NCBI GenBank assembly: GCA_964036045.1
Contig: OZ038378.1
Coordinates: 10,602,001 to 10,666,000 of the forward strand
Reading direction: 5' to 3'
DNA: 64,000 bases
Source: Eutreptiella sp. 'Long Island Sound 2002'
Taxonomy: Eukaryota > Protista > Euglenida
Part shown: piece after piece, positions 1-10,749 of the stretch
Layout: every line of letters starts with the position of its first letter
How positions within the stretch are numbered: position 1 is the stretch's first letter
Notes under the pieces: model-generated
What the model saw: only the letters and a program-made list of their open reading frames with translations
Told to the model about the DNA's origin: nothing
Database searches by the model: none
Translations under genes and position numbers: made by a program

Positions 1-3000
1 TCGTGCCATCTGGCCCGTCGACCAGCTGGGCTCGCGACAGTATCAATGTGTTCGGTGGCCCAATACTCCAGAGATCGATGATCCGTCAGGACCTCGACTC
101 GATTGGTGCCAACCCACGATTGGTACTTTTTTAAAGCACAGATGATGGCATATGTTTCTTGCTCACGCGGCGACCATTGCATTTGGCGTGGGGCTAGCTT
201 CCGAGACCAAAATGCAAGAGGGTAATGATCGCCGGTGGCCTCATCAACCTGTTCAAGGACAGCTCCGATCGCGTACCTAGATGCGTCGGTTCTAATGTAG
301 AAGGGTCGGTCAAATTGGGGCACATGCAACGTGGCGACTTCACAGAGGGCTGCCTTCAAGTGATGGAAGGCCTCCTCGCACTCGTCAGTCCACTTGACAC
401 GAACCTTTGAACCTGCCTTGCCCGCATCTCTCCCTACCTTCAATAATTCAGTGAGGGGGGCAGCAAATTTGGCATAATTCGGCACAAAAGTGTGGTAAAA
501 ATTGCAACAACCCAGGAATCCTCTCAACTCCGTGATCGTCTCAAGACGCTTCCACTTCTGAATAGCGACGAGCTTCCCTGGACTGGGTCGTCGGGTGCCA
601 TTCTCTAGGAGAGAACCACAAAATTCGACTGATTTTAAAAAAAATTTTCCCTTCTTTGGCCCACAAATCAGCTGATTGGCGTCAAGAATATCCAAAACTT
701 GGTTCAGCTGCTTCTCATGTAGGGCCACCAGCTCGGCTTCGGTCAGTCCCTCCCCCTCCGTCGCGATGATTATGTCATCTATGTACACACTCACAAAGGC
801 ACGAAGCTCAGGATGGGGTGTGAACAGCACATCCTCCATCATTCTTTGAAAAAATGAGGGGGCGTTCTTCAGCCCCATGGGCATGACGGTCCATTGGACT
901 GGGCCACATGGCGTGCACATACAGGTGAGAGGTCGGCTGTCCTTCCTCAACGGCATTTGGTGAAAGCCGTGACGGAGATCCAGCACAGAAAACAAACGAC
1001 CTCTTGCCCTCTTGGCGATTTCCTCCTCAATGAGGGGCAGGGGGTGTGAATCCGCCTTTGTTTCGGCGTTGAGGTTGCGAAAATCAACAACCATTCGCCA
1101 ACCATCAATGGTGTTCTGGTCTGCAGGCGGTGGCTTCGGGACTGTGAAGGGTGAACAGCACCATTCGCTGGTCATACAACCCTCAAGCCAACCAAATTCC
1201 CTGAGATTTCTCTCGATGATTTTTCTGAGTATCTCATGTTTGTGTCCATGATTTTCATAAGGGCGCTGTTTTTTTGCCTTATACCCTTCACGAAGCTCGA
1301 TGAAGGCTTCACTGAACTGTCCACGGACAGGGGGGTCTTTGATCAACTTTCCTGAAAGGGTTGTGTCCTTCCGTTCCTCAAAAATCTTCTCTCTTGACTT
1401 GAAACACAATTCAGTGTCCACCTGATCGCCAGGAATTACTGTCGAAAAAACTTTGGCGACTTCTTCGGCTTTGGCAGGAAGAATCTTCTTACGGATGTCC
1501 CTAAACAGGTCCGTATCAACTGCCTCTTGAAGATAGCTGGGTCGTGTGTCGAAATCCCAGAGATTCTCTTCGTGATCCAGCTCCTCGAAAGGATCCATGA
1601 AAGCTTCCACAGGGGGTTTTTCATAAAAAACTCTGAATTTGCGGCGCGATTGGAGATTTTTCCTCGCCCGTGCACTGAAGATTCTTTTCGATGTCGACCG
1701 TATTGGGGAAGAGGGAGACGAGGCGGATCCATTGGACGTTGAATCACCTTGGGTATCTGACGGACAAAAATCAGAAAAAATAAATTCATCATCAGTACCA
1801 CGCTCAACCTCAGATTCTGACCCAACACAAGAATCAGTACCAGAATCAGCAGAATTAGAGTCAGAAAGCTTTCCATCCACCAGGAATGCAAGCGAACTCC
1901 AGGGCCGCTGTGGCAGGGGACCTGTGTCGTCCCTGGCATACAGCTTAATCTTCCTGGGAAGTTCGATGTAATCTACACAAATGTCCTGTAATTCCTGAAA
2001 CCAAGGCTTGTCGTCCCACAAGGGCACAACTAAAATTGCCTGGGTTTTATCTTGCTTGATCTTGTGGATGACCTGCTGGATTAAGTGAAACGGAGGATTA
2101 ATCCACAACTTCTTGTCCCATTTGTGGGTCCAAGCGTCGCTGAAGTGCTTGTCAAAGCGCTTGTTCATACGGTTAGCAAAGGCATCATACTGTGGCCAAA
2201 AGGAATGGTGTTCATGAAAGTATTCACAAATTGCATCGCGCCATTTGTCGACAACTCTGTAGGATGAAGAGTGCCAGCGCGAAGGGCGTCGTGGCTGGGA
2301 GTCCCTACGAAGACATTCTAACTCTTGGGAGTAATCAGCACTCCCATTCACCTCTGCAATGGTGACATCTTCACCAAATTTTGGTGTCACCTTTTGCTTC
2401 AAAAATTCTTCTGCACTTTTAAACCCTGCGTGCAAAAAACGAAATTCAGGACGCTCCAAGGGACCTGACTCCAGCAAAAAACAACGACGATGACCTACGG
2501 GCGCTACCCTGTTCTTGCGAAGCCAAGGATGCCCCAAATAAAGGTCATACTTTATGTCAGCACGATAAAAGTAGTCATCCTTAAGGACAACTTCTTCCAC
2601 ATTTTGCTCTTCCCAAAGGTCTTGAGCGACCAAATGAGTTGATATATAACAACCGCGTTGCCCACCTGCGAGAGAATGTCCAGAAACTCCCTCAAGGGTA
2701 ACAGGATGAGGCGATTCAAACACGCAGTCATCGGGTAAGAATGAATTGGATTGGAGATTTACCTCTGATCCATTGTCACACAAACAAGTGGCGAGATGGA
2801 AATTTCCCTTGCAATCAGAGACCCACAGCTTTGTGACAAACTGACGGGCCCTGTGCTTGGACTGTACACCAACCTCGTCCACTACAACAGAAGGATCCGC
2901 TGCCGGATCCAGGGGAGAGGAGACAAGCGACCCTACATCAAGTAATGGTCGATCAGGAATTTGGGGATCATGCCTGAAATCGCCTGGGGAGGGGCGATTT

Positions 3001-3011
3001 TCGTGGCTCCC
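1..3011 (-). CDS. pol: Pol polyprotein (protease - Dam-like MTase - RT - RNase H), 3'-truncated by window edge
   Basis: Same frame as gag, open from 3011 to base 1 (missed by the ORF track because it has no stop in the window). Motifs: CLCDNGSEVNL (D at 2775-2777); WRMVVDFRNLN, FSVLDLRHGFHQ, MPMGLKNAP, YIDD (774-785); RNase H IRTDASRYAIGAVLEQ, EQETYAI, LTDHRSL. Confidence 0.93.
1880..2270 (-). other. Dam-like DNA N6-adenine methyltransferase domain within Pol
   Basis: Translation YDAFANRMNKRFDKHFSDAWTHKWDKKLWINPPFHLIQQVIHKIKQDKTQAILVVPLWDDKPWFQEL; DAFA at 2175-2186, NPPF at 2088-2099; matches the pattern of the DIRS1 MT / phage Dam family by eye. Confidence 0.85.
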
Positions 3012-6000
3012 CTAGGCGTTCTGACCTCCAGCGGCTGGGTTAACGTTGTGAACACAGCCTGATTCGTCGATCCACTCATCTTGGAACGGATCATCCGCTG
3101 GATTCAGGGCATTTTCGACATAATCTCGATCTGCATCGGACACCTGATCTGCACCTGAGACCTGATCCACACGATGATTGCCCTTTCCACGTCCACGGCC
3201 ACGGCCGCCGGATGATGGGCCACCACCGTCGCCACGCCCTCTGCCCTTACCAGAGAAAGGGGTTCCTGAAGGATTTCCCTTACCTTTACCCTGTGATCCT
3301 GGAGCATTTCCTTTGTTAGTACCGGATTGAGGGGTTTGGCCTGGATTTCGATTTCCGCCTCCGGCGTTGCCATTGGGACTTGTCTGGCCGTTTGGCTGCC
3401 CACCGAAGCCGGATGGAGTCCGATTTCCTTTGCCTTGGGACCCGCCAGGGCCTCCAGTGTTTTTGTTTCCACCGGAGGGGTTCGGATTACCCTTTCCCCC
3501 CTTAGCACCATGCACCTGTCTGTCATTCTTGTCTGAATTCTGCGAATTACTGACATTTTCACCAATCACCTTGTGATCGTAAGCAGACCATCGGTGATTA
3601 GCAGTAGAATGCGTCTTAGCTCGGTTCGTAGAACCTAAAAGAAGGCAGATGCTACAATGATCCTGAACATTCCGGGTGTCATTCACCTTTTTGTTGCCCT
3701 TTTGGGCCCCATTTTGGGTGTTTTGCTGGGTATTCTTGTTTCCCCCAAGACCCTCATGGAAATTTTGATTGGCGGCGTCAGCGAGCCTCTCAACCTCTTC
3801 CCACAGTTCCTGCGGGGTGAACGAAAACACCCAGTTCCTGGCCTTCAGGCGATGGCCGTGGAAACTTACTCCCCTGTTGAGGACTTGGACAAACAAGTCC
3901 CGATCCTCGTGTTCATTAAATTTGATTTTCCACGTGTTTTCAGTGAAATTCACCTTGGTAAACGACGTGGGGGAGCACTTTTGAAGTGCCTCCCTGACCG
4001 TAAACCTGTTGGCCGAGGCATCAAAGCCATCGACTTCCGCCCACCAGGTCTTGACCTTTTCTTCGGACTGTTTATTCCGAAGGGTGGCGGCGGTTTCAGA
4101 GGGGATCTTGTCAAAAATCAGATTTTTCAGCTCGGCACTAGAAAATTTTTCGCCTGAATGTTCAGATTCTTCTACGAGATTCCAGAAGCGCTGTCTCTTG
4201 TCTTGCACTTCGTGCAAGATTAATCGCGAGAACGAAGGAAAATTCTTCAACATCTGGTGGTAATGGTCCTCAGGCAGCCGGGATCCACGTACCTCCAATT
4301 GTTCCCACACCTCATCAAAGGTAAGGGGGGAACTTGAATCCTCACGATCACTCCAGGTCCTGAGCCAAGTGTTGGCCGGCGCTCCCTCAAGGCAGTCCAG
4401 GAGGGCCATCAGGAACTGATCATCCTGGAGCTTTTGAGTCTTAACCCACAGTTTAAATTCCCGTTGGAACTGAGGCCAACGTCTGGGGTTCCCATTATAC
4501 TTCGGTTGCTTGGCAACCTGACGAAGTCGCAATGAAGTGGGATTTAGAAGTGAATCCAGCCCAACACCGGCCGTAATGGCAGACACCTTGGCGGCATCAT
4601 TAGCCACACCAGCTCCGGCGAGGGTCTGGGCGAGCAACATCTGGGCTATTGCATTGGAATCAACAGCAGGAAGGGTAGTACGGGAGGCAGTTCGTTTGGC
4701 ATTCTGAACCTCAGTCCTAGCCTTCGCCGATCTACTCTGAGATCGAGAGATTGTAACCCTTTCCTTTAGCTTAGTCCTGCTGATCCTTGCGTCGGTGGTC
4801 TTAGAGTCCACCGAAGGAGCAATCGAAAAAATTTCTGTCGCCTCCTCCGACGGTTCTGTTGTTTGTTCCACCGATGATGCGCCCTCAGACCTCATGTGGG
4901 TCTTGAAAAGATCTTTAATTCCCAGCGTCTGAATGATGAGTTGCATTTGATCTTTGAGCAATTGGAGCTCAGTATCTCGCTGTAATCTGCAAGAGCAGTC
5001 GGCAGGACAGTACATACCGTGTCCTGAAGGGCCTGAGCAGGCTGTCGGACCGCTAATCTCAGTGGTTCGCAGCCAGGAGTCCACTTGGGGAGCTCCTTCA
5101 GTCCTAATTTCCAGGCTTGCCTGCCTAGCTGCCTCTAAAATTCCTTCCTCAACCGCGGCGACTAGATCGTCGCGGATGGAAACAGAGGGATGAGGGGCGG
5201 AGGGCCCGGCAACAGGTGCCTTGGTCTTCTCCTTCGGGAAGGGGCTTGCCTCCCAGATCTGCAAAAAAATGGCAAAAGATTCATCTTCTTGAGAACACCA
5301 CCACATCCTGGTATTAATTTCTTCTTGAAGGAGGAAAAAATATTCGAATAAAAAATCAGAGGCGATTCTTTCTTGACCTATCAGCCTAGACGTGGCTAAT
5401 AGACAAAGGGCCTCAAGCGCCTCAAGGTTACGGGTCACTTCGGAAGACAAATGGTTGTCCCATTGTGCCCATGAGGCTGGTCGATTATAGGTAGGTACCT
5501 CACCTGGACCACCCATCTCAATGTCGTCAATGTCGGCGTCGATGGTCTCAAAGTGTGGACATTGGTAGGGAGTATTAGTACCTGCCAGGTCCGTAAGCTC
5601 CACCGGAGCGTTGCCATTAGCGTAGGCTGGGAGATTCCAGCTGCTTGATGGCCAATTTCGACTGGGATCTTGATGGTAATCTGGGCCTCCACAGCTGCTG
5701 ATTTGTGCCCTTCTTGGGCAATTTGGGCTTGCGCAAGGCATTCCTCTCAAGGCCTCGTTCGCACAGCACCACGGCAGCGTAATCGTTACGTCTCCGGAGG
5801 TGGCGGAGTCTACGGGGCCGTACTGGGGAGCTAGCTGTGGTTGGGACACCATAGGAACAACATTCAGGTAGCCTCTGCTACCATGAAAGTGCTGCCCTGG
5901 GTCGTTGAGGGTGCCGGAGGGCTCGGGGCCGGCAAGACCAGTGGGGCAGGCACGCGAGGAGTCTCCCTGGATGTTGTTATTGGGGGTAGAACCGGACACT

Positions 6001-6047
6001 CGGACACCAACGGAGGCGAGAGCAGCAACAACTGAAGCAAGGTCCAT
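3012..6047 (-). CDS. gag: Gag-like polyprotein, 1011 aa
   Basis: Long ORF directly upstream of pol; capsid-like PKYNGNPRRWPQFQREF (~4460-4505), C-x2-C...H-x4-H cluster (~3590-3655), G/N/K and RG-rich C-terminus. Confidence 0.85.
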   Translation of the reverse strand: MDLASVVAALASVGVRVSGSTPNNNIQGDSSRACPTGLAGPEPSGTLNDPGQHFHGSRGYLNVVPMVSQPQLAPQYGPVDSATSGDVTITLPWCCANEALRGMPCASPNCPRRAQISSCGGPDYHQDPSRNWPSSSWNLPAYANGNAPVELTDLAGTNTPYQCPHFETIDADIDDIEMGGPGEVPTYNRPASWAQWDNHLSSEVTRNLEALEALCLLATSRLIGQERIASDFLFEYFFLLQEEINTRMWWCSQEDESFAIFLQIWEASPFPKEKTKAPVAGPSAPHPSVSIRDDLVAAVEEGILEAARQASLEIRTEGAPQVDSWLRTTEISGPTACSGPSGHGMYCPADCSCRLQRDTELQLLKDQMQLIIQTLGIKDLFKTHMRSEGASSVEQTTEPSEEATEIFSIAPSVDSKTTDARISRTKLKERVTISRSQSRSAKARTEVQNAKRTASRTTLPAVDSNAIAQMLLAQTLAGAGVANDAAKVSAITAGVGLDSLLNPTSLRLRQVAKQPKYNGNPRRWPQFQREFKLWVKTQKLQDDQFLMALLDCLEGAPANTWLRTWSDREDSSSPLTFDEVWEQLEVRGSRLPEDHYHQMLKNFPSFSRLILHEVQDKRQRFWNLVEESEHSGEKFSSAELKNLIFDKIPSETAATLRNKQSEEKVKTWWAEVDGFDASANRFTVREALQKCSPTSFTKVNFTENTWKIKFNEHEDRDLFVQVLNRGVSFHGHRLKARNWVFSFTPQELWEEVERLADAANQNFHEGLGGNKNTQQNTQNGAQKGNKKVNDTRNVQDHCSICLLLGSTNRAKTHSTANHRWSAYDHKVIGENVSNSQNSDKNDRQVHGAKGGKGNPNPSGGNKNTGGPGGSQGKGNRTPSGFGGQPNGQTSPNGNAGGGNRNPGQTPQSGTNKGNAPGSQGKGKGNPSGTPFSGKGRGRGDGGGPSSGGRGRGRGKGNHRVDQVSGADQVSDADRDYVENALNPADDPFQDEWIDESGCVHNVNPAAGGQNA

Positions 6048-6158
6048 GCTGATTGTGGTCCGGCAGAAAATCCCAGTCTATGAAGAAAATTGAGGGGAAT
6101 TATTCTAAATACATCTGAGTGTCCAAAACTGTCTGAAAAGATTTAAATAATCCAATTA

Positions 6159-6415
6159 TGTAAAAATGTTTGGCCGATCTGGCCCGCGAGCGCGCGTCAG
6201 CGGCAAATGGCGATTCCAGCTAAAATAGCGGAGCGCGGCGGATTTACGGGAAATGGAGCGCGGAATCAAATCCGGCATATCAGAAATATATAGGAAATAT
6301 CCTGTGACTGAGCTGCGAGGCGGCGATTCCGCCGAAGCAAAGAAAATGACCAAAATGTAGCCAATCTGGGCAGAATGTCTGAAAATCCGAGCAGATGGGG
6401 CTAGCCGCACTTACA
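6159..6415 (-). repeat. candidate 5' LTR (257 bp)
   Basis: Bounded by TGTAA...TTACA, CpG-rich, TATA-like CCTATATATTTC on the minus strand, just upstream of gag. Second LTR not in window, so unconfirmed. Confidence 0.35.
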
Positions 6416-8090
6416 CAGCCATGGGCCTTGGTATGCCCCATGGATTGACACTTGAAGGCCATCAAGACTTACTCCAAGGGTTACTCTACAAAGGTGGATG
6501 GTTTCCTACTATTTCGATGGTTTGACTTGATGGAGATTGTTACCGGATGGGACATCTCATATGCCTACAACTGATCTTGACTGGGGACGCGCTGAAGCGA
6601 TTGGTTTAAGTTAAAGAAGAATCTTTGAGCCAAATCAACTCATTGGTGTTCATTTGTTCAATTTTTGCATAGACACTCATATGTGAACTTTTGTATTAAT
6701 ATCTTAAGCAATTTGTGCTTCCTTTACGCTATTTTTTCAGCTGCTATCATTTGTTTTGTGTTGTCTTTGGTTTCAGGGTCAACACATCACACAAGTGCAT
6801 TATTGTGGTTGTTCGTTTGTTTACTATTTTTCTGTTTTTGTCCAAAAAAACCTTTTGGAAAAAAACACATATTTCTCCGGGTTCTCTTGGGAGAATCAGC
6901 CCCAGACCCACCCATTTTCTGGCTGGGTGTGTCTGGGCTTGGGAGGGAAGTGTTAACCCGGTAGAACTCTGTGCTGGTTAACACCCAACCCAAATGCTTT
7001 GCATTTTTGCCACCCAATTTTTTTGTTGCGCTACACCTTCTTTGTGCTTTTCAGCCTGAGATGTATCTCAGGACTTGGGAGGGGAGTGTAAGGTTTCCGT
7101 GCAACATATATTTTCCCTTTTTTCAGTGCAAAATCCTGATATATGTACACTCACAGAACTCCACGATCCCAGCACAATTTGGACAGCGTTGGTATCAGTG
7201 GATTAGGAATTTCTGTAGTTTCACATTGATGGTGTTTTCACCATTTTCTGTACTATAAAACTGAGTTTGGGTCGGCGACGGCCAGTCCTGAGATCGCGCG
7301 CGCCGATCCAGAAAATCTCGATTTTCTGACGATTTTTAAGAGTTTTCAATCACTTTTATTGCTTAGATTAATTGTATATCAGTTTCAAGCCTAAGCGGAT
7401 GTTACGGCAGCATCGCGGCGCCGTTCCGCGCTAGTTTTTTTGGCCCAAGTAGGCCATGTTCACGATTTTTTGTAAAACCGTAGGTAGCTCAGACCGTGAA
7501 GTTACATGCACCATATGACAGCCCATCAGTTGGGCTTTGCATGCATATGCTGATTGGGTTTCCAAACGCGTCAGTGCACCGGCACCGCGCGTTGGGGGGA
7601 GACCCGTGTTCATAGTGCATGTATGCATTGTTTTGCTTATATTACAATGTTATATTTCTGCTCAGAACATGTGAAAGGGATCGTTTCGAAATCCCTTCGG
7701 ATTTCGTGGTCATGACCTTGCCTTGTACGTCGTCGGTGTTGGGGATCTGAGGGAGGTTTGTTTGTGTTTTTTGGGGAAATGTTGGATGTATAGGCCAAAG
7801 CCTATTTGCAATGCAACAAAGGACTTCAAAAATTATTACATGTTAACCCGGTAGAACTATGTGGTGGTTGACACATACCGAAACATCGCATTCTATTCAT
7901 TTAGCCTACATTCAGCCATATCTGCAAAAATATCACAACAGCCACCGAAATCCAGCAAACCAACCATGCAGTTAGCAGGCCAACCACGAGAATGCCCGCC
8001 TTACCAACAGGCAAACAAACGCCGCACCGCCAAGAAAGCAATCATGCCCCGCACCGCCGCACCGCCAAACCCACACAGATTCGTTTGCCC

Positions 8091-9033
8091 TCAGTCAAGC
8101 GGCCAGTCGCCAAATCCACGTTCCACGTGCCCCTTGGCCTGCCTGCGCGCAACCGCAGCAGCAGACCGCTTACCACGTTTGCCTTTCGTGTGTTTGACCA
8201 CTCTAGCACCGGCGACCACCCTCAAGGCCCCGAAGGCCTCCTCCTCCTTACACATAAGAACAACTCGTGCGTCTTCTTCGGCCACATCCACGAACTCACT
8301 CAAACGCCCATACAGAATTTCTCTCGCTAACAGCCCTTTCCAGTCTTCAAGTGCGATCGCCGTGTCCATGTGTTGGTCTCTGAACGCCAGCGAGTAGCTC
8401 GAACCAAGTCGATCTTTGCCAGCAAGCACCTGCACCCGTGCTTCAATCTTCAGCGCCACGAAAGAATCCACAAAGCCCATCGCCGGCAGAGGATAACCAG
8501 TCGAATAACCCAAAGCCCGCAGTGCTTCCCATGTCAGAAATTCAATATCACGGCGAAAACCCAACTTCTCGTATCGTCGCTTCAAGGAGACGAACATCTC
8601 CGTAAGCAAACCTTCGGAAAAGCGCTGTTCAAGCACATAGAGACCCTTCCGGTGTTCACATTCAACAGCTTTGGTCGTCGCAAGCGTCGTGCAACAACTC
8701 TCTTCATACACCCAACAGCCATAGCAGATATTGTAGGCGCGCGGCAGCGCGCTCAGACACACACTATGAACTCAACAAGTCCTTGAACTCCGGCATTCAG
8801 CCCACTCCATGAGCGCAATCCGCCAGACTCAACTGCAGCAGCTTTGCCTGCAGCCACACAACCTCCGATGAGGGTTGGTTGTCCCCGCTTTCCTGTAGAG
8901 AGCACACCGCAGATGTCAGGTCACCACCGCGCAACGCGCAAATGAATGTGTCCTCCTTCATGCTCAGGCGGAGTGTCCCGCTCGCTGACGCTAGGACTGC
9001 TCTGCGCCGGCTTTGAGAGAGGGCTAAGTCCAC
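8091..9033 (-). pseudogene. disrupted coding-like segment of unknown family
   Basis: Adjacent 78-aa and 223-aa ORFs with protein-like composition separated by a stop/frameshift; no motif recognised. Confidence 0.25.
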
Positions 9034-10749
9034 GCAGCCCTCTAGCGCCGCTGAAGCGCGCCGTTACGTTTCGGCTATGCCGAGGTGCACGTCAGTGCCA
9101 TCATTTTCCTTGGGCAGGTCGTTGCGAAGCACGTTTGTAGATTGAAATCTGACCCGACTTGGTCCCGACTGAGGTCTATTCCTTGACCTTTGTTCCCACG
9201 GACACCGAGGCACAGGCAGTGATCCAAATACTTGATAGCATTTTAGATCACTAGACGTGATCTACAAACATGCCTGTGCAAAACACAGCAAACAGTCCTA
9301 AAATCCTGAAAAATGTACAAAACACTCAGAATACTATAAAGCCTAGAAAAATTATAAAAATTGTAGATTTTACCTAAGTTTTCTTCATAGCAAAAATTTA
9401 ATCCTACACACAATAATCGCAATGCGCGGCTACCATGTAGCATTTTCAGTCCGCGAACTCCGCGGGCCATTCAGCAGCCCATATTATAATAAAATTGTAT
9501 AATCTACAATAAAATTGGAAACGAAATAGGGAAGAGTATCTTCTACATTTGTGGATCCATTACAGGTTTCAATGAGCCCACTTTGCAGAACCATCACGTA
9601 TCAACCCAAAGGACCAATTTAAACCGAAAAATTGTTATGTTGGGCGATGACATAGCCATCAAAAGAAAGGGTCACCCACTTGGTTTTGTCAAATGCTTCT
9701 TCCAGAAAGGTCCTTGTGGCACGATTATTGTCTTGCACGATTCTTGTCTTGTGCATGTCCACTTGACAACGGTTGGATGCTTTCTTGTTCTTCACTCGGT
9801 TCTTGTTGTGCTCCTGTACGGCATTTTCCATGTTTGAATGTATTCAGGCACATCCTCTACTTCCCTTGCAGCCTGTGATGGGTAGTTGTGTTGTATCTAA
9901 ATTGGTGTGAAGTAACTTTGTGCCTCTACTAGCCAGTGCAACCCCCACTCTTCTCCACGCAATAGACGAAAGAAAATAGACACTGTTGTGAATGATAGGT
10001 TCCATGTTGTTGATCTATTGAGCGCTCCTCACTTGCTTTGTTGTGTTGCAAATGTCAACGTAACTAGTAAGGCCCTAATACAAGGTTTCGGAATGCCTCA
10101 TTTTAGAAGTTTAACTTCGGATTTCGCGGTCTTGGGCGAAGCACCTCCCTAACCTAGAAGTGTAGTTGACATTAGATTTTGAAAGCCCAGGTACATGCAT
10201 GTAACTGTTAAGAAGTTGATGACTAACTACATCTTGGGCTAACTTCGGCGGCCTAGCTACTTCCGGAAAAAATGCGGCCAAGCTTCTTCTGGAAAAAAAG
10301 CAAATTTGAAATTGTTTTGAATCTTGCAGATATTTGCCTCTCGTCCAATGATTTAGCTGTCCAAGAAAGCGGTGTTTAGGAACGACCATTTGTGGGTAGA
10401 TCGTAGACCGTTGGTGATGAGTGATGGTTAGAGAAGTGATGCTTGCTCTAGTTTTTTCCGCTCTCCCCACACTGTCTAAAGACGGCAAGACTCTTTGTGA
10501 CTTCCGAGGCACGACGTTGGTGTGTTGCATGCATTCCGCCCACATTACACCAATTGGTCCGTCAAACATGAAAATTCAGCAGGATTCAACATGGATTTAT
10601 TTGAAGACGTAAAAACTGCCCTCCACAAAGACTGCACTAGATTTGGTACTGTTGCCGTGGCGGCAATCCCAAATGGGCCATGCAAGAGATGGCGTTGCGA
10701 TCACTCTTGCTCAGCATTCGAATGCAACACGGTCGCATAGTTAGATGGC

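Follow-up and report, generated by a model that had tools for sequence, protein, structure and literature searches.

A chromovirus-like Ty3/gypsy retrotransposon of Eutreptiella with a predicted DAM-like N6-adenine methyltransferase domain in Pol

In a 64,000-nucleotide stretch of the genome of the euglenid Eutreptiella sp. 'Long Island Sound 2002' (GenBank assembly GCA_964036045.1, contig OZ038378.1, positions 10,602,001 to 10,666,000 of the forward strand; hereafter the window, with negative positions lying beyond its left edge), we identified an intact long terminal repeat (LTR) retrotransposon of the Ty3/gypsy type, chromovirus-like in organization, that was inserted recently and belongs to a very abundant family. 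Its Pol polyprotein contains a predicted DAM-like N6-adenine methyltransferase (MTase) domain between the aspartic protease (PR) and the reverse transcriptase (RT). A first-pass annotation of the window, made from the sequence without database searches, had proposed a Ty3/gypsy Pol with a Dam-like domain at this place and had doubted whether such an architecture had been described. The proposal held, as the region comprising RT and RNase H (RH) is nearest to that of Ty3 (E 1.5e-49) and the inserted domain is a homolog of the DIRS-type MTase domain. The doubt is settled by a preprint of May 2026 describing DAM-LTR retrotransposons, including chromodomain-bearing Euglena elements (Fernandez-Moreno et al., bioRxiv 10.64898/2026.05.21.726589). 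The PR-DAM-RT type of architecture is already known and is not new.

The element and its coding sequence

The complete element measures 10,766 bp and lies on the minus strand (window -4349 to 6416), as determined from the adjacent DNA beyond the left window edge and by comparison with four further full copies. The LTR signs of the Metaviridae are all present: direct LTRs with TG...CA ends, a 5-bp target duplication (GGCTG) flanking the element, and a primer-binding site (TGGTAGCAGAGG) and a polypurine-tract-like purine tract (GGAGGGGGA) adjoining the LTRs. Self-BLAST placed the 5' LTR (533 bp, minus strand) at 5884..6416 and the 3' LTR (minus strand) at window -4349..-3817, beyond the left window edge; the pair shows 2 mismatches in 533 bp (99.6% identity), and the LTR boundaries agree across four further full copies. 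The primer-binding site (5872..5883, minus strand; sequence reading), which we take to be complementary to the 3' end of the initiator tRNA-Met, abuts the 5' LTR and lies within the gag open reading frame (ORF), and the purine tract stands immediately 5' of the 3' LTR. In the 1.65 kb from the pol stop to the 3' LTR (L021:1184-2827, i.e., window -3816..-2173), no ORF exceeds 106 amino acids (aa). This stretch is ~97.5% conserved among copies, as is the remainder of the element. Copies of another repeat flank the element on both sides: window 7087-7840 and 9142-9564, to its right, have 93%-identical counterparts at -5369..-4601 and -7392..-6969, and the offsets differ between the sides.

The gag ORF (3012..6047, minus strand; 1,011 aa, from the ORF list) ends in a TAG stop at 3012-3014, and a weak DUF1759 match was all that it yielded against Pfam. 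Its ATG (6045-6047) is located ~370 nt into the 5' LTR, and the gag frame crosses the LTR end and the primer-binding site; the 3' LTR also bears gag codons 1 to 54, reading into the flanking DNA. The pol gene lies in the same frame, divided from gag by this lone in-frame TAG (codon confirmed by reading). As the first-pass annotation had it, Pol is encoded in a single open frame, which is uninterrupted on the minus strand from window 3011 past the left edge. Translation across the window edge showed that the in-window part (1..3011, minus strand) continues to window -2169, giving an entire pol of 1,727 aa (L022:831-6011, minus strand). In window 2965-3020 (minus strand), the TAG precedes GGGAGC and a short ATCGCC...GGCGAT inverted repeat, an arrangement reminiscent of readthrough signals.

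The order of domains in Pol is PR, DAM-like domain, RT, RH, DDE integrase, and chromodomain, all encoded on the minus strand. The aspartic-protease region (2442..2834; ~Pol aa 60-190, limits approximate) was recognized from motifs read in the translation, i.e., DNGS (2766-2777, with its D at 2775-2777) and LYLGHPWL (2520-2543). Pfam RVP has no match in this copy; a relative (P0027) has RVP upstream of Dam. The DAM-like domain (1872..2279; Pol aa 245-380, 136 aa), for which homology, an AlphaFold2 model, and selection provide the evidence, is followed by a Ser/Asp-rich linker without a Pfam match (1437..1871; ~aa 381-525), which leads to the start of RT. Alignment with the Ty3 RT puts this start ~110 aa ahead of that of Pfam RVT_1. 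The RT core (615..1139; aa 625-799) matches RVT_1 with an E value of 1.8e-25 and contains YIDD at 774-785, and the RH domain (1..392, running off the left edge; aa 874-1008) matches RT_RNaseH_2 (aa 874-973; E 2.5e-29), with RT_RNaseH also matched by Pfam. The closest solved protein to the RT-RH region is the yeast Ty3 RT/RH (4ol8), to which the E value given above refers.

The first-pass annotation had suggested that the sequence left of the window would distinguish an integrase from a tyrosine recombinase. That sequence encodes an HHCC/DDE integrase (aa ~1212-1500) and a chromodomain (aa 1581-1618), together spanning window -648..-1840 on the minus strand. The HHCC (HKWESPHAH...CAQC) and D...D motifs are present in the translation, and the integrase region matches the Ty3 integrase (E 2.5e-4) and Pfam rve (aa 1308-1378; E 1e-6, 29.3 bits, just under the 32.6 cut-off); in a relative (P0023), Integrase_H2C2 and rve both exceed their cut-offs. 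Pfam Chromo scored above its 25.1 cut-off (27.6 bits, E 2.7e-6), and the Pol C terminus matched CDYL2/HP1 chromodomains at ~1e-9. No Phage_integrase match, which would denote a tyrosine recombinase, was found in Pol with Pfam at E<=1, and no cytosine-5 DNA methyltransferase (DNMT) families were among the Pfam matches at E<=1 in Pol or Gag. An identity as a DIRS element was rejected, given the DDE integrase in place of a tyrosine recombinase, the direct LTRs, and the position of the MTase domain (aa 245-380) upstream of RT (aa 625). Also rejected was an EpiLTR, which combines DAM, DNMT, and a chromodomain, since no DNMT domain was found in Pol or Gag and the 3' 1.65 kb has no ORF longer than 106 aa. 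Judged from its sequence, the element is a chromovirus-like Ty3/gypsy retrotransposon whose Pol has one additional domain (aa 245-380).

The DAM-like domain and its relatives

The domain had been placed at 1880-2270 (Pol aa 248-378) by the first-pass annotation, and translation bore out the landmarks named there, i.e., the protease D, the RT YIDD, and four motifs of the domain itself. On the minus strand, these are DAFA (2175..2186), which is motif-I-like and supplies D52 and F54 of the alignment described below; NPPF (2088..2099), which corresponds to motif IV and is presumed to be catalytic; AILVVPLW (2016-2039); and KPWF (1998-2009). An exhaustive phmmer search with a 161-aa stretch returned 1,693 proteins at E<=1e-3, including 119 at E<=1e-10. 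We aligned 55 homologous domains (alignment A1), which are 28-68% identical to the one studied here. Pfam Dam (PF05869) is matched by 50 of these (best 8e-13) and TIGR01712 (phage_N6A_met) by 46, with E<=0.01 applied to both counts, and the PCIF1 methyltransferase model (PF12237) is matched by 7 (best 7e-4). Conservation in A1 is highest at the D and F of DAFA, a Trp, and the N-P-P of NPPF: F54, W74, and P83 (the second P of NPPF) do not vary, and at least 90% of the sequences have D52 and N81. The copy in the window matched neither TIGR01712 nor PF12237, had no WW domain, and scored 15-17 bits with Dam when searched inside the whole Pol.

The AlphaFold2 model of the domain, built on A1, has a mean predicted local distance difference test (pLDDT) value of 89.2 and a predicted TM score (pTM) of 0.84. 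Among predicted viral structures (BFVD), it is most similar to small phage DNA N6-adenine MTases (E 4.5e-9, TM 0.67-0.69), with ~150 aligned columns that cover nearly the full length of these 153-182-aa enzymes; giant-virus PCIF1-like proteins rank behind them (7.6e-6 or worse). Among solved structures, PCIF1/CAPAM ranks first (Foldseek E 2.3e-4, Z 9.5), and further matches are PH1948/METTL5 (METTL5 Z 8.3), Erm/KsgA, M.BseCI, T4 Dam (Z 7.1), EcoDam (Z 7.0), and M.TaqI. The phage Dam family has no solved structure among the structural matches. Searches of solved structures by sequence, with either the single domain or the 55-sequence profile, gave nothing meaningful; in a word-indexed protein search with the whole Pol, all matches over the DAM region were members of the element's own family; and an Atlas feature search gave scores of 0.76-0.77, which we treat as a lead only. 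A chance occurrence of the NPPF motif was considered and rejected on the grounds of the domain-level homology and the fold. The domain is thus predicted, from its model and its homologs, to be a compact N6-adenine-type class-I S-adenosylmethionine (SAM)-dependent MTase fold of the phage-Dam/PCIF1 superfamily with its presumed cofactor and catalytic motifs intact, and by sequence homology it is the same domain as the MTase domain of DIRS elements.

The relationship to PCIF1 raises the question of substrate. In one alternative, the domain would be an RNA-directed, PCIF1-like adenosine MTase that modifies the element's genomic RNA (at cap-adjacent or internal positions) or the RNA strand of the reverse transcription template; the consequences would concern the RNA (its stability, its translation, its packaging, or its escape from sensing by the host) and not integrated DNA. 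PCIF1/CAPAM, the best solved match, shares the same NPPF, and the rRNA N6-methyladenosine (m6A) enzymes METTL5, Erm, and KsgA come next. A profile comparison of the domain with a PCIF1-like exon of the same genome (hhalign) also gave a probability of 94.4% (E 9e-8), pairing DAFAS..N.RF with ELFASPLNARF and NPPF with NPPF, and the homologs matching PF12237 point in the same direction. Against this, the sequences are far nearer to phage Dam than to PCIF1 (50 versus 7 of the 55 homologs, with best E values of 8e-13 and 7e-4), the predicted structures favor phage DNA MTases over PCIF1-like proteins (4.5e-9 versus 7.6e-6 or worse), and the WW domain is absent. On balance, we regard an RNA-directed enzyme as unlikely. 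The PCIF1-like genes of the genome include L041:1354-2061 (minus strand) and L042:835-2307 (plus strand), which match PF12237 at 130 and 90 bits, respectively, and both carry ELFASPLN and NPPF; the former is the one aligned to the DAM profile.

Copies, selection, and recurrence of the architecture

The family is young and large. Among ~3,800 candidates in the 2.28-Gb genome, 40 or more of the copies that were scored show 98-99% identity (all copy comparisons were pairwise), and a protein cluster at 90% identity has 4,843 members. Candidate Dam-domain matches in the genome likewise number ~3,800. An uninterrupted 1,727-aa pol was found in all five full copies, and aa 1-1503 are open in eight of nine partial loci. 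Across ten copies, the synonymous differences (pS) are ~0.05 and the nonsynonymous differences (pN) ~0.004; the ratio is clear despite the non-independence of the pairs. By region, pN/pS is 0.07 (DAM), 0.08 (RT), 0.10 (PR region), and 0.17 (linker between DAM and RT, the least constrained of all). Within DAM, 14 polymorphic codons are synonymous only and 6 change the amino acid, and NPPF is intact in nine of the ten copies, with NPLF in the remaining one. The survey of other copies that the first-pass annotation had proposed therefore came out in favor of a conserved domain under purifying selection as strong as that on RT. Selection preserves the domain no less strictly than the core enzymes, and a pN/pS of 0.07, similar to the 0.08 of RT, indicates that the element needs it.

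More distant relatives retain the arrangement. A sister family from another assembly is 68% identical over Pol, with regional identities of 69% (DAM core), 54% (linker), and 88% (RT); dN is 0.27, and only dN and identity are given because synonymous sites are saturated. The same genome harbors another Ty3/gypsy family, which is only ~30% identical (L040, G000:C8:59946501-59956500; ORF 3318-8621, minus strand). Its gag is of the CCHC type, and its Pol (1,768 aa) has the same order of Dam (40 bits, which exceeds the cut-off), RVT_1, RH, and Integrase_H2C2. The DAM-then-RT order also occurs in four metagenomic relatives (P0023, P0113, P0029, and P0057), and P0027 has the order RVP-Dam. Two others (P0132 and P0136) have the DIRS order RT-RH-Dam, and a 1,114-aa protein from a JGI metagenome (P0034) combines rve, Dam, and RVT_2, i.e., a copia-like arrangement with the MTase domain between the integrase and RT.

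These data bear on the possibility that the arrangement is an artefact, through nesting of a DIRS fragment or chimeric assembly, or else a functionless, decaying relic. The concern has a precedent, since some Euglena mixtures of DAM-LTR and DIRS sequences may represent nested insertions or assembly artefacts (10.64898/2026.05.21.726589). Here, the copy survey rules it out: the 1,727-aa frame is uninterrupted, and all copies examined, which occupy many chromosomes, have the same architecture. The size of the protein cluster, the low pN/pS of the domain, and the same domain order in the 30%- and 68%-identical families likewise stand against an artefact, to which we give practically no credence.

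Several other observations concern the genome and public sequencing runs. MT-A70 genes are present in the genome. An estuary metatranscriptome (X1) contains five short contigs that share 95-99% identity with the element, including one in the DAM domain (window 1908-2051), and these may represent RNA or carried-over DNA of a Euglena-like organism. The Euglena gracilis spliced-leader 24-mer has 5,458 genomic occurrences, scattered across the chromosomes in both orientations (e.g., L037-L039), with none for the reversed control. Long ORFs (~580-730 aa) with strong Phage_integrase matches are clustered at G000:C16:21.8-22.3 Mb, C25:20.65-20.97 Mb, and C22:19.45-19.53 Mb, and the strongest such matches are on the small contigs C1832 and C55, which are possibly bacterial contamination.

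Possible function and comparison with known systems

The single 1,727-aa ORF contains Dam, RVT_1, RH, rve, and Chromo. A DAM-LTR retrotransposon is defined by a DAM domain that shares its ORF with RVT_1 and an integrase and by an RT of the Ty3/gypsy group, and with similarity of the RT to Ty3 standing in for a phylogeny, the element in all probability belongs to this class. In the preprint that introduced the class, DIRS-derived DAM domains were captured at least four times by Ty3/gypsy-like elements, and the chromodomain-bearing forms are the commonest (10.64898/2026.05.21.726589). The screen used there was an hmmsearch at E<=1e-5, and the Dam score of 15-21 bits in the present family therefore suggests that the family was probably missed. 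It may be absent from the published catalog or may sit in its control set of DAM-lacking LTR elements. If the family was counted as DAM lacking, the 6mA comparison made for Euglena in the preprint would be blurred. The family may thus be a new or uncatalogued member of the class described in 2026, and its novelty would lie in this membership.

How such a domain might serve the element can be outlined as follows. Because pol is in the same frame as gag with the TAG between them, pol expression needs readthrough of this codon. Gag-Pol would be produced in this manner and would carry the domain into the particle. There, the domain would act as an active N6-adenine MTase, which the protease may free or which may remain tethered to RT by the disordered Ser/Asp linker. 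It would methylate adenines of the reverse transcription product, either the RNA:DNA hybrid or the cDNA, and new insertions would then bear N6-methyladenine (6mA), favoring permissive chromatin in a host with 6mA machinery. The chromodomain would steer integration. In line with such a role, copies of DAM-LTR elements are richer in 6mA, including those of E. gracilis, and DAM-LTRs are associated with the host AMT1 (10.64898/2026.05.21.726589); this enrichment of DNA 6mA is also a point against an RNA-directed enzyme. Taken together, the identity as a DAM-LTR element and an adenine-methylation mechanism seem to us marginally favored, and the DNA-6mA mechanism as such falls somewhat short of an even chance.

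Several lines of evidence weigh against DNA methylation by this domain. The MTase profile and structure matches anticipated by the first-pass annotation were obtained for the homologs and for the model, but the copy in the window, searched alone against Pfam Dam, scored 21.2 bits (E 2.5e-4), under the 28.1-bit cut-off. The best solved structural relatives (PCIF1, METTL5, and Erm/KsgA) act on RNA, and the substrate may be other than DNA; indeed, DNA as the substrate is an assumption, since the nearest solved structure, PCIF1, is an RNA cap-adenosine MTase. The DAM domains of DIRS, DAM-LTR, and adintovirus elements gave no 6mA in dam-minus Escherichia coli, a caulimovirus DAM was reported to be negative as well, and in E. 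gracilis the LTR elements showed low or no detectable expression (10.64898/2026.05.21.726589). An earlier study placed the DIRS MTase domain in the PCIF1 clade and judged the DIRS1 copies inactive (Iyer, Zhang, and Aravind 2016; PMC4738411). The public sequencing runs that contain element sequence are fragmented, very deep, and DNA-like. Finally, purifying selection means that the domain is needed and is not proof of catalysis.

Some of these points suit a catalytically inert module, with a structural or binding role such as nucleic-acid or SAM binding in the particle or, as proposed for DIRS1, mimicry of PCIF1 to engage RNA polymerase II. The negative heterologous assays of DAM domains from transposable elements (TEs) and of the caulimovirus DAM (10.64898/2026.05.21.726589) and the argument that DIRS1 copies are inactive (PMC4738411) would be expected of such a module, and the selection that we observed fits a noncatalytic role equally well. 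The pattern of conservation argues otherwise: D-x-F-A and N-P-P-F are the most conserved motifs across the 55 homologs, despite identities of only 28-68%, and both are intact here, as is NPPF in nine of ten copies. Degenerate pseudo-enzymes usually lose catalytic or cofactor residues. The preprint, which also describes an E. gracilis DAM-LTR/DIRS group, finds the Asn-Pro-Pro triplet and its pocket conserved too (10.64898/2026.05.21.726589). An inert module is therefore less probable than an enzyme in our assessment, while keeping an appreciable share of the probability.

The placement of the DIRS MTase in the PCIF1 clade (PMC4738411) and the negative outcome of the E. coli assay, which is directed at double-stranded DNA (dsDNA) (10.64898/2026.05.21.726589), also add to the case for RNA set out above. 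In a broader form, which we consider rather unlikely, the domain would act not on duplex DNA but, like PCIF1, would N6-methylate the element's own RNA (cap-adjacent or internal) or the RNA:DNA intermediate. If so, the negative dsDNA assays in E. coli would be explained. The host caps its mRNAs by spliced-leader trans-splicing, and the element RNA, which needs its own 5' end, would then supply its own adenosine methylation for stability, translation, or packaging.

Retrotransposons with their own adenine MTase represent a newly recognized route for mobile DNA to engage the host epigenome. To our knowledge, no such TE-borne adenine MTase domain has yet been shown to be active. The present family is a good test case for both the activity and the substrate of TE-borne DAM domains, as it offers thousands of near-identical, intact, and recent copies in which the domain and RT are equally tightly constrained by selection. 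E. gracilis has both 5-methylcytosine (5mC) and 6mA, and public nanopore methylation data are available.

Of the known systems, the Euglena group of DAM-LTRs is the closest: it shares a non-DIRS, Ty3/gypsy-like backbone, a DIRS-type DAM in Pol, thousands of copies, and a conserved Asn-Pro-Pro. The present family differs from it by its low Dam score and, having no DNMT, is not an EpiLTR. DIRS1 elements have a homologous MTase domain with the shared pattern D-x-F-A-S ... N-x-R-F ... W-x-N-P-P-F ... I-L-V-V-P-x-W ... W. However, DIRS elements have a tyrosine recombinase, inverted or split repeats, and the MTase after RT/RH, whereas the element described here combines a DDE integrase and chromodomain with direct LTRs, a 5-bp duplication, and an MTase that precedes RT.

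The small phage MTases (PF05869/TIGR01712) provide the best predicted-structure match and share the D-x-x-A and NPP[YF] motifs, but their sequence identity to this domain is 13-22%. They are free-standing enzymes, whereas this domain is embedded in a polyprotein, scores below both curated cut-offs, and has an activity that is predicted. PCIF1/CAPAM provides the best solved structure (Z 9.5), an identical NPPF, and, through the PCIF1-like gene of the same genome, the 94.4% profile match. In contrast to PCIF1, a cellular RNA enzyme that is not part of a retroelement, this domain has neither the WW and helical domains nor a Pfam PCIF1 match. With chromoviruses, the element shares the PR-RT-RH-integrase order with a C-terminal chromodomain, an RT nearest to Ty3, and TG..CA LTRs. 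It is set apart from them by the extra 136-aa MTase domain and linker between PR and RT, by a Gag of unusual size (1,011 aa, larger than is typical) whose start lies within the LTR, and by the in-frame TAG between gag and pol.

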